Positions 4,046-13,000 of a DNA stretch of 64,000 nucleotides are shown piece by piece (position 1 is the stretch's first letter; every line of letters begins with the position of its first letter). The DNA is from Schmidtea nova. Taxonomy: Eukaryota. The translations under genes were made by a program, and so were the position numbers. The stretch lies in contig CM097883.1 in assembly GCA_044892505.1 (NCBI GenBank), positions 440,758,001 through 440,822,000 of the forward strand, given 5' to 3'. The notes under the pieces were generated by a model, which worked only from the letters and a program-made list of their open reading frames with translations, had not been told where the DNA came from and ran no database searches.

Positions 4046-7000
4046 CTAGAAATGTCTGATAAGCATCATATGTATATAATGATATAATGTACATGAAACT
4101 GAATAGAGCAGATATATCAACATTGGATAGAATAAATGCGGATTGGATGCAAACCTTATTGATGCAACGATCCAAGGATTATCTTGATATGCAAACAGTC
4201 CTATTAATATCCAGAAAAGTAATTATTATTAGGATATCGTGATTTTGTTTAAAAAATTCATTTTTCTTTAAACCCGAAAGTTTATTTATAAATATTTAAT
4301 AATAATAATAATAACTTATTTAAATTATTAAATAATAAAACACTATTTATTGAAAACAACACTGTTGTATCAAGATAACACTAAGAGTATATTATATTAT
4401 ATTATATTATATTATATTATATTATATTATATTATATTATAAAATAATCATCATTAGCGAATTATAAAAATAATAAGAGAGAACTACATATGTCTGTGAA
4501 CTTCGCAGAACTTAATATAATATAATATTATATTATATTATATTATATTATATTATATTATATATATATATATATATAAATTCATTTTAAAGAAAGGAAA
4601 ATGCTTAGATTAAAAAAATGCAGCACATTGGTGCGTGCGGGTATTTTTTGAGACCAAATACAAATTATCATAATTATCTTTTTTCACCTTTGATCTTTTT
4701 TTAAAAAATTCATTTTTCTTTAAACCCGAAAGTTTATTTATAAATATTTAATAATAATAATAATAACTTATTTAAATTATTAAATAATAAAACACTATTT
4801 ATTGAAAACAACACTGTTGTATCAAGATAACACTAAGAGTATATTATATTATATTATATTATATTATATTATATTATATTATATTATATTATATTATAAA
4901 ATAATCATCATTAGCGAATTATAAAAATAATAAGAGAGAACTACATATGTCTGTGNNNNNNNNNNNNNNNNNNNNNNNNNNNNNNNNNNNNNNNNNNNNN
5001 NNNNNNNNNNNNNNNNNNNNNNNNNNNNNNNNNNNNNNNNNNNNNNNNNNNNNNNNNNNNNNNNNNNNNNNNNNNNNNNNNNNNNNNNNNNNNNNNNNNN
5101 NNNNNNNATGCTTAGATTAAAAAATTGCAGCACATTGGTGCGTGCGGGTATTTTTTGAGACCAAATACAAATTATCATAATTATCTTTTTTCACCTTTGA
5201 TCTTTTTTTATTATTATTATCAATAATTTCCATAATGACTATAGTGTGTATTTGATAAAGGCTGTGCCGAAAAATTGTGTACTTGTTAAAAGAAATTTTG
5301 ATCTATAGTCATTATGGGAACTATTGATAATAATAAAAAATACAAATTGGTTTTAGGCACTCCCAAAATGTATCTCGATTCCTGACTTATTTCCAGAACG
5401 TGTTAAAATTAATAAATAAGTTGAAAATACCGAAAATAAATTATTTTGAAATCGTTGACACTCAAATTTATTATATATGACGTCATTACATGCCAATATA
5501 ATAATTTAGGTTCATTTTATATTTACAGTTGTAAATGTGTCACGGAGATTTTGTCAAAGTACGATTTAAATTTTTCTTTCTGAGTTGCATTTTGTGATTA
5601 ATAATAATAATTATTATTATTATTATTATTATTATCATAAATAATAATTAAAAAAGTAGTAAAGTAGTATGAAGTGAAAACCCAATTAAAAATAATTTCG
5701 TATTGGAGTGATGAGGATTTTTTACAGTTCCACTTTTTATATTATACAATAATAAACATTAATAATAATATCATAATTATCTTTTGTTTCACCTTTGATC
5801 TTTTTTAATATTAATATCAATAATTCCCATAATGGATGACTAAAGATCAAAATTTCTTCAAATAAGTACACAATATTTCGGCACAGCCTTTATTAAGTGT
5901 GTATTACAATCGCTATATTAACTTAGACCTAAATACTAACCTTAATTATTTATTATATATTTTATAATGATTTTATTAGATGAAAGTAATGGTCGCGCAC
6001 GCTTTGTAAAAATATTTTAAAAATAATTAAAATAAATATTAAGTAACCGCGGGGCTTGATTGGTGTGAGAAACTGTGGGGCGAGCCTGAAAGACTGAGGC
6101 CGTTGGGCGCTCTTGTCGGAATCTGTTTAAATCTTATATGCTTAAATGTAAATTGCTTTCTGGATGTTGCAATCTTGTCGGGAGAGGTCACTTTTGCCAA
6201 GAGGTAATTTCTCATAAATCATCGCGAAATTCTCATGTGGTCATACCAGAAATACCGAGTAAATCTTCCATGATTATAGAAGAGTTCTCAAAAATGGTGG
6301 GAAATGTTTATCCATTTTCGAAATCGATACACGACTTTGAGACAGATCTGAGCATTCTAATTGATAATTTAAATGGAAGTAACAATAATATAAATTTCGA
6401 AAATTTCGAAAAAGTGGAAGAGATTATTCGCGATTGATTTGCAATCTAAATCTTTAAATTTAAATTTTGATTTTAGAATTTTAATGTTAATTTTGGGGTA
6501 AATGGTAATATTAAAAAATATGCAATTTTTAGTTTGTAAAATAATAGAAAAAATATTTAAGTAGTTGTTTTAACAATATTGACAAATGGTTGGGTGCTGC
6601 TGGGGTGTTGGTTAGATGGACAACTGAGATCATTAAGATTTTATATGTTAGGGTGATCTCGCCAACATAAAAACATTCCCCCGCTGACACCCATGATGTA
6701 TCCCTAACTACTCATCATGTTGGTGCTGTGTCAACGTTGTGAAATGACAAGGCAGGTGAGCAACCTTTCGGCTACTATTCCCTTGTTTATTCACGGGTCC
6801 ACCACTACCGATAGAAGGTGTTTGTGGATTTCTTTCGGTCCCACTTATGCTCTTTTCTATTGTCCTAGGGTAATTTAATTTTAATGTATCTGCAGCTTTA
6901 AATGAATCCGGGTTTTAGTTACATTCAATCCTCAAATGTTCCACAAACAAACAAGACAAGTCAAATCATTCGTTTACAATACATTTATTTATAATTTAAC

Positions 7001-10000
7001 AACACTGAGGGTCTAATTACATTCAGCAATTCCTGCTCGGAGAGTCCACTGAGCAGATCCACTTCTATGCCTAGGCGGTCAGCATATGCCCGTCTCTCCC
7101 TACGCTTCTTCGCTCCAAGGCGATTTCTCCGTTTCGTCCTCTTTGAACCTTCCGGGATTATTGTTGTTGCTGGGGTAGTTGGAATTGGGATTGCCTCTAT
7201 TTCAGTTTGGGTACTCGTAGTTACCGATATCGAGTCCACCCATCGGTGAAAGGTACTCGCCCTGATCACTGGGCGTAATTGCTCGGTGATAAATTCTTGG
7301 GTTGCCACTCTCAGGTAATTGGACAATTCCAATTTTAGTGCTGCAACCTCTCTAGCCTGCTCGTCGGCTACTCGTTCGGCTCTGTACCTGGCTTGTAAGA
7401 TGGCTTTGACCCTTTCGGGGTTAAACCATGTTGTCTTGATCCTTTGATGTTCGTCATTCAATTGTCGTAAACGATTTTCCAATGCTCGGGACCGTGCCTT
7501 GTGTTCCTTCACCTCCTGTTGATAATTCCGATTTTTATTCTCGTTCATCTAGGAGAAATATACCGTTAACTAGGGCAGGTGTAATTTGCTAGGTTTCTCA
7601 GTCACCTTTTCGTTACTAAACAACTATGTATCATCCTCATACACTTCTCATGCATTCAACACCAAAACAAAACCCTTTTAGAGATGAACACATTAATTTA
7701 GAAGTATTTCTTCTCTGGACGTATCTCCTTCACGATCCACTGAACGGTCGCAACTCCTGGTCGGCAGGATTCTCGTCGCGGCGAATTCCATTTGCATGAT
7801 ATAGTTCTGGTGCTGGACACCAACACAATTTATCTCGATAGATAAATATCTCCCACAGGCGAAGGTCCTTGGGCTCCGGATAGGGTTCCGTTGAGACGCT
7901 TCCTGGAGCGTTCGAGTAGACGAAGACTTCCCCAGTGTCGCCACACCGAGGCCTGTCTAGCGGCACGTATCCGAGTCGATGAAATGTTCTTCCTGACATC
8001 ATTCCGGTGCTCAACAACCAGCGAGGTTGATTTGTGTCGTCTACGAATTGGTAGAACCATTGGTCAGATTCTGGCTTGGTAGGATCCGAGGAGGACACCC
8101 AATCGGCGTCTCGTTCCCACCTCAATTTTAATGTGAATGCGCACGCTGGGATGCTGGCGGCTGCGCTCATATGATTCCTCATCCATCGGCGCAGGTGTCG
8201 GCGCGCAATTTCGCTAATTCGGCGTGGAGCTTCCGTTTCTCCCTCGATTGTAGGATTCACCTTAGGCCTGACTACGGAGCGGGTGCGCCGTTTCTTTCGG
8301 ATGATACAATCTTCTAGTTTCACGGGTAGGAATTCCACTGGCCTCCATCTACTGTTTTCTATTTTGACCATACTACTCTGAAGAAAGATGACCAGAATTA
8401 ATTGATGAACCTTACGGTTGATCATCTCTATATATACTACCTGGCCCACTCAACTGGTCGATCTATTTTCTGTAGGCCTCTGCAAATCATTCTCATTTCA
8501 CCCAGCGAGTGACGGTGATGTATTGTAGGCCGCTATCACCGATTTGTTGGCGAGCTAATCTACTCCGCATTTTTACTCCGATGATTTTTTAGTTATACCT
8601 AATTCACTTTTTGTTGTTTATGACATCAATTTTAGATTTATTATTTATCATTTCAATCACGCTCAATTTATTTTTGTTATTTATGATTATTTTATATTTA
8701 TTAGTTGTCACGCATACTCGTCTCCTCAACAAACTTTTATTAATTCACCCCACAATTGACTAACAATGATCATGCTACTATGGGAATGTCAAGAATCCCT
8801 CACTCTATCTGATTTAGTAATCCGTGTATTATCGACACCTATTATAGGTGCTTGCCTCTCATATTCCTCGGGATTTAGGTGCATACGCTGGAAGGTATAA
8901 TTGATTTATTACCACTCCCTGACGCTGGTGCTCTTGCCTAAACTAGTATGACTTATGCTTTGCCTACCCCTGTTCTCGTTCACCCTAGGTTTCTCAGCAC
9001 TGATGTTATTTGTTACACATACGTATCCCTCGTCTAGAGATATCGCCATGATGTATATCATTCATATGCGACTATCTTTCCTTTGATTGACTCTATGATC
9101 GCTCATTCACATGAGTCTATCTTTGCTTTAATTTACACTCACTAGATTTCACTCGATACCCTATGTGCATTTATTCCCCTTCCCCTTACCAAGTATTTAG
9201 TAAACCTATGGTCCCGCCGCATCAGCACCTCACATAAAAATGTGTTGCGCTGAGAGGCCCAGGAATCCGTCAGGCTGTTAGGCCTCCGGAAAACCTTATT
9301 GATTTTAGCATGATTATAATTATGAGGGTTTAAGATAATAATACAAAACTCAACTCGAAATTACCTTTTATTTTCTCTTCCAAGTTGTTTACAAGTTGCT
9401 AGTTAGTAGCTGTTACTTACACTCAGTAAAAAATGACATTCTCAATACTGATTTATCTTCAGTATTTATACTAAACCGGTGTTGTTGGTCAGCCAATCAG
9501 CATCGAGTATGTGTGTATGTTTGATCATTCTTTTGTATTGTCGGCTTTTTGCTGCCTAATTCAACTCACTGATTTATTTGTTTAATCATGCGGTAAGTTT
9601 TCTTTGTCATCAATTTATTTTATTTTGTTTTTGTTTTAGGTCTTCGGTGACGTCCGCCCACGCTCTGTCATATTCAGATTTTATCTGCTTCGCATGAGTG
9701 AGTTTTGAAGATTTATTTTGTTTTGATTAATACTTTATTTCTTTTAGATGTTGCCGCTTATTTGCTACTTTTTATGCTGGTAATTTATTTTATTGTTATT
9801 TTGTGTAGCTTTATTTTATTGATTGCATATTATTTTCAGATGCTGCTCGATTTGGCTGGCCCAACAGTGCTTAAAAATTGGATTTGTAATTTTTTAGGTA
9901 GTTTAAATGGTTTAATGAGAAGTTTTATATAGAATAAAATTTCCTTCGGTTGAAATTGATCTTGAATTTTTAAAAATGTGCGATGTTTGTGCTGTCGCTA

Positions 10001-13000
10001 ACTTTAGGTATCATTTAAAATATTCTCATATTGCTCAAAATGGTATTGATGATGAATATGATGGAATATTAAATGTGTTGAAAACTATCTTCGAAATCCA
10101 AAAGTTGGATTAGCTCAATTTTGGAGTTGTAGAATTCTTGCAAGACGAATTAAAAAATCAGACTTCGCATTCGTGAAATGGTTAGTGGTGATACACTTTA
10201 ATTCAGTCGACATTTTTGAAGAAAACGAGTTTGAAATAGGCTACTAATCTGGATAAAGATAAAACGAAATGCGTCGCAGATTATAAACGTAATACGTTTG
10301 AGCTTCTGCATAAAATGAAAAATGATTTAATATCAGCTGAGAGAACCAGATTTTATTAGATGAAAGTAAATTTATGATTTTTTGAGCGAATTGAATGTTG
10401 ATAGACGGTTTGTATTTTTTTATGTAAAAAGTCTCGGAAGCTAATCTTTTGTAATGAACATAACCAGTAATTATTACGAACACTGGGAAAAAGTACATAA
10501 AACAACTCCATCTATAGAAGAAACAAAATGCTAGATTCTACAAGAGGAATTCAAAAATTCATTACGAAGATTAGCTTCCAATACTTTTTACATTAAAAAA
10601 TACAAACCGTCCATCAACATTCAATTCGCACAAAAAAATTTTGAAAAAAAATCAAAATAAATTTATTTTCATCCAATAAAATTATTATAAAATATTTTGG
10701 GTTCTTATACGAATTCAAATTGAATCATAGCGCAGCTCAAGCTTCGAGAAACATCAATCAAGCATTCGGAAATAGATCCACTAACGAAAAAATGCACGAT
10801 ATTGGTTCCGAAATTTTCCTTCTGGCAATTTGAGTATCAACAACGAACCTCGAGAAAGATCACTGACCTGTCTTGATAACGAGGAATTAAGGACGACCGT
10901 GGAATCCAAACCACACACAACTAATCGTAAACTTGGATCTAAACTAGGATTTAGCCAAACAACTGTATTACAACATCTGCATGCCATAAATAAAGTAAAA
11001 AAATTGGACGCGTATGTGCCGAACATATTGACGCAATCACAGATGCTCAACCACAAGACCATATGCGCATCTTTATTGCTTAGCAATGAACGATTATTAT
11101 TTTTACACCAAATTATCACTTGTGATAAAAATGGATTTCATATGATAACAAAAAACGTCGAAACAAATGGGTAGATAAGATTACACCGCCAGGACACACA
11201 TCTAAGCCGAACATTCATGGAAAAGAAGTTATGGTCACGGTATGGTGGAATGCCAAAGGTGTGATCTATTATTCCTTCCTGAACCAGGCGATACCATAAC
11301 AGCGGTGTCCTTTTGCCATGATATTTGATTTCATGCATGAGAAACTTATGAAAAAAACAACCAGCATTGCTCAATCGGCACGGCGCAATATTACTGCATG
11401 ATAACGCTGGACCACATAAAGCTTCAATCACTGTTGACAAATTAGCCTCTCTGCAATATAAAGTTTTTTGGAATTTTAATATAACCAGAGCGATATATAA
11501 CCCATCTATTCTGTTTATGGAAGCGAGGTATATATTCTGCAGTATTCCAATAAAGAGATACTAGTTTGTAATTTGGTAGAAAGTGAGCTTGCAATGTAAA
11601 GATTATTTATAATGAATAAAGAATGAGTTTGTATCTCTCACAGACGAAGCCAGGTAATAAAGCTGTTTGATATTATAAATGTGACACTATAACATGGGTT
11701 CCCAACCTTTTCATAGTACCATACCTGTGCGTTGTAAACAATTTGATGGCGAACCGGTAAACCTAATTTTTTTAATGGGGTATGAAATGCAATGGAAATT
11801 TGTAATAAAGACAAGTAACTTGGGATATATATATATTTACTCCCGTAACACCTATTTACGAAATTATGTTACTATCTCAAGCAATAAACTTATATTAATT
11901 ATTAATGAGTTACAGAGCATTAATTGTATGTACGAAAATCCCTACTCTACAGAATTTAAACAAGTAAGCGCGTGCACTTCGAATTTGATTCTATGGATCT
12001 TTGATTTTAAGTGAACATTTATATAGGTGCTTCTCACTTTTATTAAAAACTTCAGCATTATTTCATAAATATTTACAATATAGTCGACAATGCATGCACA
12101 TTTGCAAAACAATACATACAATTTTCAAATTAAATTCTTAAAAATTGCGCCACAACCTTGATGAGTAGATCCTGGGATGGACAACTAAATTCAATATACT
12201 CTTTGAATTATTCGTTTTGAAGAGTATAAAAAGGAAATAAAAAACGGCTTTATTATCCAAACTCAAGCTCAAACGCAATTCGAATGAGACTGAACGCGAA
12301 CCCTGAGAATTGGCGTTTCCCCAGAGATCAGTCGTCTTCACTCTTTTGGGGTCGTAGATAATGCACTCAGGTACAGGCAGCATCATTTGAGATTAGGTAT
12401 ATCCCAATTAAGTATTACAACACCAACAATGGATAAGAAATTGTAAAATATTAAAATGTATAGGTTATTGTAGTCATGTTTTTTTCGCAAAACAGATTTT
12501 TAATAGATTTTTGCTTTATATATAGTAAAGTAATTCGCGTACCGGTAGCTGCTTGCCCGCGTACCCAAGGTTGGGAATCCCTGCTCTATAAGATGGGATT
12601 TCTATCTAATGCGAATAATTTTATATTTTACATAAATTTAAAAAATTAGTTAGATAATAAACAACATAAAACTAAAATTATAAGCTCACTGCTCTCTCGC
12701 CAACTGAAATATTTGAATATAATTAGGAAAGACATCATAGAAAACCATAAAGTGTAATAGATCACCCTTAACTAGATAAAAATAAAACAATAAAGGAATT
12801 TACTGAAATCTCAAATAATCCAATGTAAACAGAAATTAATCAAAGTTTATTTACAGATAATTTTAGTTGAGTTTTATGTCAAGCTTTTAGTAATAGTAAT
12901 ATCAGATATTAGATAACTTCAACAAGTCAAAAAAAAATAATAATATTATTAACTCGAAGAAATAGTAAACATTTCCGAGTTGAGGAAAAAATAGATATTA

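Follow-up and report, generated by a model that had tools for sequence, protein, structure and literature searches.

Why should genomic DNA encode what looks like a spliced leader (SL), ending in ATG and directly opening an open reading frame (ORF)? The question is raised by a 64,000-nucleotide stretch of the Schmidtea nova genome (GenBank assembly GCA_044892505.1, contig CM097883.1, positions 440,758,001 to 440,822,000 of the forward strand), here called the window, in which a leader-like 42-mer lies at positions 6099-6140. A first inspection of the letters alone, the sequence-only reading, had offered two explanations, a retroposed copy of a trans-spliced mRNA and a gene or element that hard-wires an SL mimic for translation. 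Our analysis leads us, with high confidence, to read 5990-10348 as an old solo long terminal repeat (LTR) of a non-autonomous planarian LTR-retrotransposon family, broken by a later 3.3-kb insertion, and the 42-mer as the built-in leader of that LTR, decaying neutrally.

It is useful to begin with the leader of the species itself. The sequence-only reading had compared the 42-mer with a Schmidtea SL that it quoted, and full-text literature searches gave no match to the published planarian SL as a sequence string. The true SL1 therefore rests on the genome's own SL RNA genes. A genome pattern search for the SL 3′ end followed by GTA located three of these (L047-L049), clustered at 409.01 Mb of C2, the same chromosome as the window. 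They have a 42-nt SL1 exon followed by GTACGGACCG, an Sm-like AAUUUUUAA and a perfect terminal hairpin, and their exon/donor boundary reads ATG/GTACGG. When the whole SL1 gene was compared with the genome by BLAST, only these three loci and one 75%-identical, SL2-like locus (L090) continued past the exon; all other matches ended at the exon's last base. L090 is a second type of SL RNA gene, on the minus strand at C2:408589450-408589800, 0.42 Mb from the SL1 cluster. Its exon equals SL1 over the first 20 nt and then diverges (..TCAATAACTCTATAATTAATTTATG), and it has a GTAAGC donor and a canonical Sm site, AAUUUUUGG. The quoted SL proved to be the exon of the three SL1 genes, letter for letter. 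This excludes the earlier suggestion that the window's leader might simply be a different species' SL, since the quoted sequence is this species' own SL1 and the SL2-like gene has its differences at other places.

Against this SL1, the window's 42-mer, which reads exactly as first quoted and has no second copy within the window, matches at 35 of 42 positions. The runner-up 42-mer in the window reaches 25/42, and the maximum in 50 shuffles was 27/42. The seven changes are A7G, A9G, G12C, A17G, A21G, A27G and A29T, so that both the 35/42 match and the count of five A>G changes among seven, as first reported, are correct. Likewise, the 42-nt element does end in an ATG that opens an intronless ORF of 99 amino acids (6138-6437).

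What, then, is this leader part of? Window positions 6040-6240 are a dispersed repeat: all 40 scored genome matches span the interval, at 84-100% identity, and a first look gave 1,104 candidates. The edges of the repeat were drawn from an alignment of 25 copies, of which the longer ones yielded a consensus of ~1.2 kb ending ...GAGAGAACCA. Its 5′ edge is sharp at window position 5990 in 25 copies. The window's LTR corresponds to consensus 3-617 (5990-6595, 88.8% identity) and 659-1186 (9874-10348, 82%); by eye it spans 5990-6597 and resumes at 9871, with ~1.09 kb of its own sequence. The parts of the unit, with what flanks and interrupts it, are these:

5969-5989, plus strand: left copy of the 21-bp flank duplication (GATTTTATTAGATGAAAGTAA), identical to the 21 bases at 10349-10369
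5990-6098, plus strand: LTR head (presumed U3), which starts TGGTCGCGC, has an AT-rich middle and ends ...GTGGGGCGAGCCTGAAAGACTGAG; recognized by its sharp edge and by being shared among families
6099-6140, plus strand: relic SL (SL1 exon), 35/42 by identity to the true exon
6138-6437, plus strand: 99-codon ORF from the SL's ATG, specific to this copy and not conserved, by copy comparison
6141-6597, plus strand: first cargo segment of the LTR, ended at 6597 by the nested insertion, from the consensus alignment
6598-9866, unstranded: nested high-copy TG...CA unit with a GTGC target duplication (6594-6597 and 9867-9870), from the repeat search
9871-10348, plus strand: rest of the LTR (consensus 659-1186), ending GAGAGAACCA
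9976-10113, plus strand: decayed start of a second, family-wide ORF resembling one TBP repeat, from intact copies
10349-10369, plus strand: right copy of the 21-bp flank duplication, matching 5969-5989

The unit has the anatomy of an LTR. Its termini are TG...CA (TGGTCGCG...GAGAGAACCA) both in the window copy and in the family, and the SL starts 109 nt inside them. Exact 5-bp target duplications flank three family copies (L061, L066, L068), duplications matching at four of five bases flank three more (L059, L072, L076), and many copies are inserted in (AAT)n microsatellites. In L054, the 3′ end of the family LTR is followed by T, by the primer-binding site (PBS) TGGTAGCAGAGCGAGG and by a leader region 72% identical to that of L089. 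The latter is a complete sister element, with paired 1,750-bp LTRs of 99.9% identity, the same PBS as L054, a polypurine tract (PPT) before its 3′ LTR, and (ATT)n flanks. Because the family end in L054 adjoins a PBS and leader also found in L089, the window unit is assigned as a solo LTR of the L089 lineage. Paired LTRs and PPTs are thus seen in sister families (the pair in L089; PPTs in L089, L107 and L108); within the window's own family, coordinates point to one candidate pair (C3:97748513/97751281). A same-strand pair, C2:303584675/303593400, was rejected as an LTR pair, being a 4.1-kb segmental duplication with a period of 8.6 kb.

The arrangement seen in the window is far from unique. 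A search for other copies of the leader, which the sequence-only reading had called for, returned 1,741 genome matches to the last 32 nt of true SL1 (at most 2 mismatches), against 0 for the reversed control, as well as 87 copies of the SL variant typical of the window's family. The SL1 sites often form same-strand pairs 4-6 kb apart, for example C1:51437561/51443130 and C1:121321934/121328052. We sampled 20 of them, the first ten listed on the plus strand and the first ten on the minus strand, leaving aside loci already in the analysis. In 19 of the 20, the complete SL directly follows a common head of 105-112 nt (TGGTCGCGCCCGC, an AT-rich stretch, GCTTGATTGCTGTGAGAGATTGTGGGGCGAGCCTGGAA), and the sequence behind the SL differs in nearly every one of those 19. 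Two of the 20 are preceded by a PPT, as expected of 3′ LTRs. The head also precedes the SL in L031, L034, L050 and L089, and it lies directly 3′ of the PPT in L089, L107 and L108. The window's head belongs to this type as well; the nearest to it among the loci compared is L034, which shares its head subtype and has a perfect SL. An ATTGG "CCAAT box" and a GC-rich box had been noticed just upstream of the leader. Both are present, ATTGG at 6059-6063 and GGGGCGAGCC at 6077-6086; the GGGGCGAGCC box is conserved among heads, but ATTGG is not, most heads having ATTGC or ATCGC there. The LTR plan of this lineage is a conserved head of ~110 nt, a complete 42-nt SL1 exon, and a variable cargo of host mRNA.

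The nature of the cargo is clearest in sister families. In L089 and L093, a WD40 protein begins 22 nt past the SL (Pfam WD40, 1.8e-19). In L101, UFL1 is present from profile position 1 (4.8e-25), its ATG lying 5 nt past the SL, and L100 carries the N-terminal TBP-binding domain of TAF1 (4.7e-5). To find parents of the WD40 and UFL1 cargoes, the first 23 nt of each, with 12 free positions in front, were searched for in the whole genome. The WD40 cargo start occurs in six SL-preceded copies and in one SL-less copy, which reads ...TTGTAAATATAG (...AAATATAG) immediately before the cargo, with an AG acceptor exactly at the junction. The UFL1 cargo start occurs in four SL-preceded copies and one SL-less copy, which reads ...ATTAATTTTTTAG (...TTTTTTAG) at the same place, with the acceptor within one T of the junction. 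Junctions at acceptors are the signature of trans-spliced mRNAs copied into DNA; the cargoes of these sister families are 5′ ends of host mRNAs. LTR anatomy, high copy number, a shared head, diverse cargoes and, in two sister families, an SL-cargo junction at an acceptor are all found in these loci. L089 also holds a 1,387-codon frame (L089:1946-6109; C1:94635445-94639608), which begins inside the 5′ LTR, crosses the PBS and reaches as far as the PPT, taking in FHA, HSP90, ubiquitin and coiled-coil fragments on the way. A frame of this length far exceeds chance for stitched fragments and hints at selection, or at a mechanism favoring in-frame joins.

How could one element family place so many host sequences behind one leader? 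The leader would first have become part of the LTR through reverse transcription of a trans-spliced RNA all the way to its 5′ end. From then on, a cDNA reaching the 5′ end of any trans-spliced host mRNA would end in the SL complement. Such a cDNA could anneal to the SL that lies behind the head near the 3′ end of the element RNA, and its extension through head and PPT would generate a new LTR composed of head, SL and a host 5′ fragment. Strand transfer at the SL would explain why new host-mRNA 5′ ends have repeatedly been placed exactly behind the head and SL. The sequences immediately before the SL vary with head subtype (GGAA, GGAAGCCGAAA or GGAGGCCTGAG), and the same head-SL subtype is found with different cargoes, as in L093 versus L095. 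Because of these two observations, we take head and SL to be inherited together while the sequence behind them is replaced. We give somewhat less than even weight to the possibility that the lineage uses the SL in its LTR as strand-transfer homology, serially capturing host-mRNA 5′ ends (~1,700 SL sites), and that the window's family is an old branch whose leader also bears an A-to-I scar.

A weaker alternative to strand transfer is that the LTR-borne SL acts, or once acted, as a cis-splice donor. Read-through RNA carrying the SL followed by GT would be spliced to trans-splice acceptors of host genes downstream, and the chimeras would be reverse-transcribed, which would likewise put host mRNA exactly behind the SL. 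The coincidence of SL-cargo junctions with acceptors fits this scheme, cis-splicing from an LTR to a trans-splice acceptor is documented in Echinococcus (PMC4558846), and three head-SL copies are indeed followed by GTA (L031, L034, L050). We nonetheless regard it as improbable. GTA is not enriched, with three head-SL copies among 21 matches of SL 3′ end plus GTA versus ~30 expected in ~1,700 sites by a base-composition estimate; the window copy has no GT after its ATG; and the scheme alone does not account for cargo inside both LTRs.

Returning to the window's own family under the LTR reading, its size depends on the pattern used. Strict patterns give 87 copies (family-specific SL variant) or 134 (first 23 nt of the cargo), and loose candidates number up to ~1,100. 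All 100 listed matches of the 134 to the cargo start follow the SL 3′ sequence or a close variant, the sequence in front being either of the window type or that of a subfamily with an 8-nt duplication. None of these 100 is preceded by acceptor-like sequence, so no SL-less parent of the family's cargo was found among them, and the parent gene that the sequence-only reading had asked for, with an acceptor at the junction, did not emerge. One or two 8-nt units (CTTAAATG, ATTAAATG) stand directly behind the SL, at 6141-6156 and in family copies, and echo its last 8 nt, CTTATATG; the larger subfamily has two. They could be products of slippage at the SL-cargo junction.

Does the leader serve the frame that it opens? 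Of 26 distinct copies, two keep the frame that starts at the SL's ATG intact (the window copy, including its segmental duplicates, and L006); in the other 24 it is broken. Since several copies run for 71 codons in a different downstream frame, the 99 codons of the window arise from a private indel; the ORF is without function and owes its existence to this small indel, which fuses the SL-ATG frame with a second one. Pfam offers no family for it beyond ORC4_C at E 0.05, and a phmmer search of 1.84 billion (1.84e9) representative proteins found no true homologue. The single match (P0001), to a translated tandem repeat in 11 stretches at 26% identity, was judged spurious. In the 25-copy alignment the SL columns are conserved at 0.95-0.97, equal to their flanks, and the SL in this family is decaying neutrally as ordinary LTR sequence. 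A second ORF, ancestral for the family, spans 142 codons, stays open to the LTR end and survives intact in 3 of 17 copies. Over its first 80 residues it resembles a single TBP repeat: Pfam PF00352 scores E 1.7e-4 in the intact copy L060, just under cutoff, 91 of 100 Atlas feature matches are TBP clusters, and a PDB profile search put TBPs on top, weakly (E 0.06-0.9); phmmer against PDB gave no match. The window-family LTR, too, thus carries host-like coding debris.

These results contradict the proposal of a hard-wired SL mimic serving the ORF, which has no relatives among the proteins searched and whose leader decays like its neighbors. The wider idea is that an SL-like 5′ leader is kept so that element transcripts translate like trans-spliced mRNAs. 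It draws on the complete SL and ATG kept at ~1,700 sites immediately behind a conserved, promoter-like head, and on the many exact SL copies, which suggest that young, active families preserve the leader. Even so, its chance is slim. In the window's family the SL-ATG frame is broken in nearly all copies, and the SL itself has five fixed changes on top of ordinary decay. Moreover, the SL RNA is what supplies the trimethylguanosine cap, and a DNA-encoded leader would be without it.

The SL exon without intron sequence and the intronless ORF behind it would also fit a lone processed pseudogene, in which one trans-spliced host mRNA was reverse-transcribed with a relict SL at its 5′ end. This is very unlikely, because the same unit includes 109 nt of conserved head upstream, common to other families; because the copies number at least 134, family members showing TG...CA ends and 5-bp duplications; and because the unit has no poly(A) tail at its 3′ end and no SL-less parent among the matches listed. 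What survives of the earlier proposal of a retroposed mRNA is its core, a DNA-encoded relic of an SL and an SL-bearing RNA that was ultimately reverse-transcribed; what does not is the picture of a single retrocopy with the SL at its 5′ end. Finally, we give practically no weight to the idea that the 42-mer represents a second leader type, as a divergent SL RNA gene or pseudogene, for although the 35/42 identity and an ATG end typical of flatworm leaders speak for it, the window's ATG is followed directly by CTTAAATG and not by a GT donor, no Sm site follows, alignment to the SL1 and SL2-like genes gives no similarity past the exon, Rfam returns nothing relevant, whether for the whole window at the gathering threshold or for 5800-6700 with E values as high as 10, the head shares with the upstream regions of those genes only AT-rich words, with no relationship, and the variant SL is found only in repeat context, all of which bears out the sequence-only reading on this point.

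The A>G skew of the leader is real, and it is cleaner in the family founder than in the window. In the family consensus, the leader departs from SL1 at five positions (7, 9, 17, 27 and 29), each time by A>G; the window copy has T at position 29 and, in addition, G12C and A21G. Five out of five has P ~7e-6 under the family's decay spectrum and the SL base composition, and 1e-5 to 4e-4 under simple transition/transversion models. Later decay within the family is mostly G>A and C>T, with A>G making up 10% of changes. The L034-type head and the family consensus head differ by only four changes of mixed kinds, and the A>G cluster is thus confined to the leader. At eight other loci the SL shows one or two of these A>G changes, single ones recurring at positions 17, 27 and 29; none of the eight is among the family junctions listed. 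Two of the five changes destroy TATATAAA inside the leader. The direction and clustering of the changes would be compatible with A-to-I editing of an RNA intermediate, as the sequence-only reading had suggested, and a U lies 5′ of four of the five sites. A search for an intramolecular double-stranded partner of the SL found no long inverted repeat, and the fold is no better than that of shuffles (z 0.42). The skew noticed at first thus holds, but we consider it doubtful that editing was the cause.

Several points weigh against our interpretation of the unit as a solo LTR with a capturing leader. First, no autonomous element bearing gag-pol was found among the loci examined. The interiors of L089 and L054 contain no reverse transcriptase or integrase domains; that of L089 is pieced together from fragments of FHA, HSP90 and ubiquitin, and that of L054 is decayed. 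Second, the window copy is flanked by a duplication of 21 bp, not 5 bp, which is atypical for the family. In contigs derived from other members of the flanking repeat, 5985 is connected with 10378 over a short diverged stretch. The empty site, it is suggested, held a single copy of the 21-mer, and the duplication was made at insertion, perhaps through aberrant, non-concerted integration. Third, apart from CCA, the 3′ ends of the LTRs differ from family to family. Fourth, the first cargo segment of the window's family has no SL-less parent among the matches listed. Fifth, the SL's TATATAAA may instead serve as a TATA box within U3, and the sequence is compatible with the SL either as the start of R or as part of U3. 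The only four sequencing runs that contain this stretch, contigs of unspecified kind with remnants of Nextera adaptors, carry no information on where transcripts start. Last, strand transfer is a step that we infer.

The surroundings of the LTR are themselves repetitive. The nested unit at 6598-9866 is 3.27 kb long; its first 800 nt returned 1,676 candidates at a first look at the genome, at 87-92% identity, and its two minus-strand ORFs (187 and 239 amino acids) have no match in Pfam. The DNA flanking the LTR (5671-5989 and 10288-10600) belongs to an extremely abundant repeat, with a summed contig word depth of ~1e5-1e6 over four runs. A region that includes at least window positions 5108-7740 exists in five copies of 99.8-100% identity, three of them spaced about 68 kb apart on C22 and the other two 52 kb apart on C2 (440.71 Mb). 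These five near-identical neighborhoods represent either a recent large segmental duplication or assembly redundancy.

A lineage of LTRs that carries an SL may be relevant in several ways. If the capture model is true, it constitutes a new route for gene fragments to be captured and shuffled. The leader acts as a landmark that marks each capture precisely where a host mRNA begins. Such a mark would make the use of trans-splice acceptors, the timing of retroposition and the template switching of reverse transcriptase readable from genome sequence. In practical terms, ~1,700 genomic copies of the SL will confound SL-based transcript-end calls and gene models in planarian genomes. Full-text literature searches turned up no account of an LTR with a built-in leader that marks the serial capture of host-mRNA 5′ ends.

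It is instructive to set these elements beside systems that are already known. Like the genuine SL RNA genes L047-L049, the window locus has a 42-nt exon of the same type ending in ATG; unlike them, it has no splice donor, Sm site or 3′ hairpin, and its upstream sequence is different. In dinoflagellates, DinoSL-tagged retrocopies carry relict spliced leaders (PMC5585692, PMC6050394). There as here, a leader encoded in DNA proves that a mature trans-spliced RNA was reverse-transcribed, and it marks a former host-mRNA 5′ end. However, the DinoSL is the 5′ end of a dispersed retrocopy, whereas the planarian SL lies within an LTR and follows a conserved head of 110 nt. Its spread is by an LTR element with PBS, PPT and 5-bp duplications, and the cargo consists mostly of short 5′ fragments, often stacked. 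Also comparable are solo LTRs and TRIM/LARD-type elements of flatworms. These include the Echinococcus ta-TRIM, a non-autonomous LTR retrotransposon whose LTR donor competes with the SL for the acceptor (PMC4558846). With them the planarian elements share TG...CA ends, a short target duplication (in family copies), many solo copies, the lack of reverse transcriptase and integrase coding, and an interplay with trans-splice acceptors. The LTRs of ta-TRIM have no SL; in the planarian elements, the LTR DNA itself includes the SL exon.

Host-sequence transduction by LTR elements is also well documented, in acutely transforming retroviruses, maize Bs1 and other gene-carrying elements (reviewed in PMC13317346). 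The planarian elements resemble these in being non-autonomous, in carrying intron-free host fragments of the kind acquired by template switching, and in sometimes holding long chimeric ORFs, as in L089. They differ in that the cargo lies inside the LTR itself and starts at a fixed landmark, the SL, in many independent families. Cargo anchored in this way implies repeated, homology-guided capture rather than rare read-through. Overall, the window locus is an ordinary dead copy, and the class to which it belongs is an unusual variant of known retrotransposon behavior.

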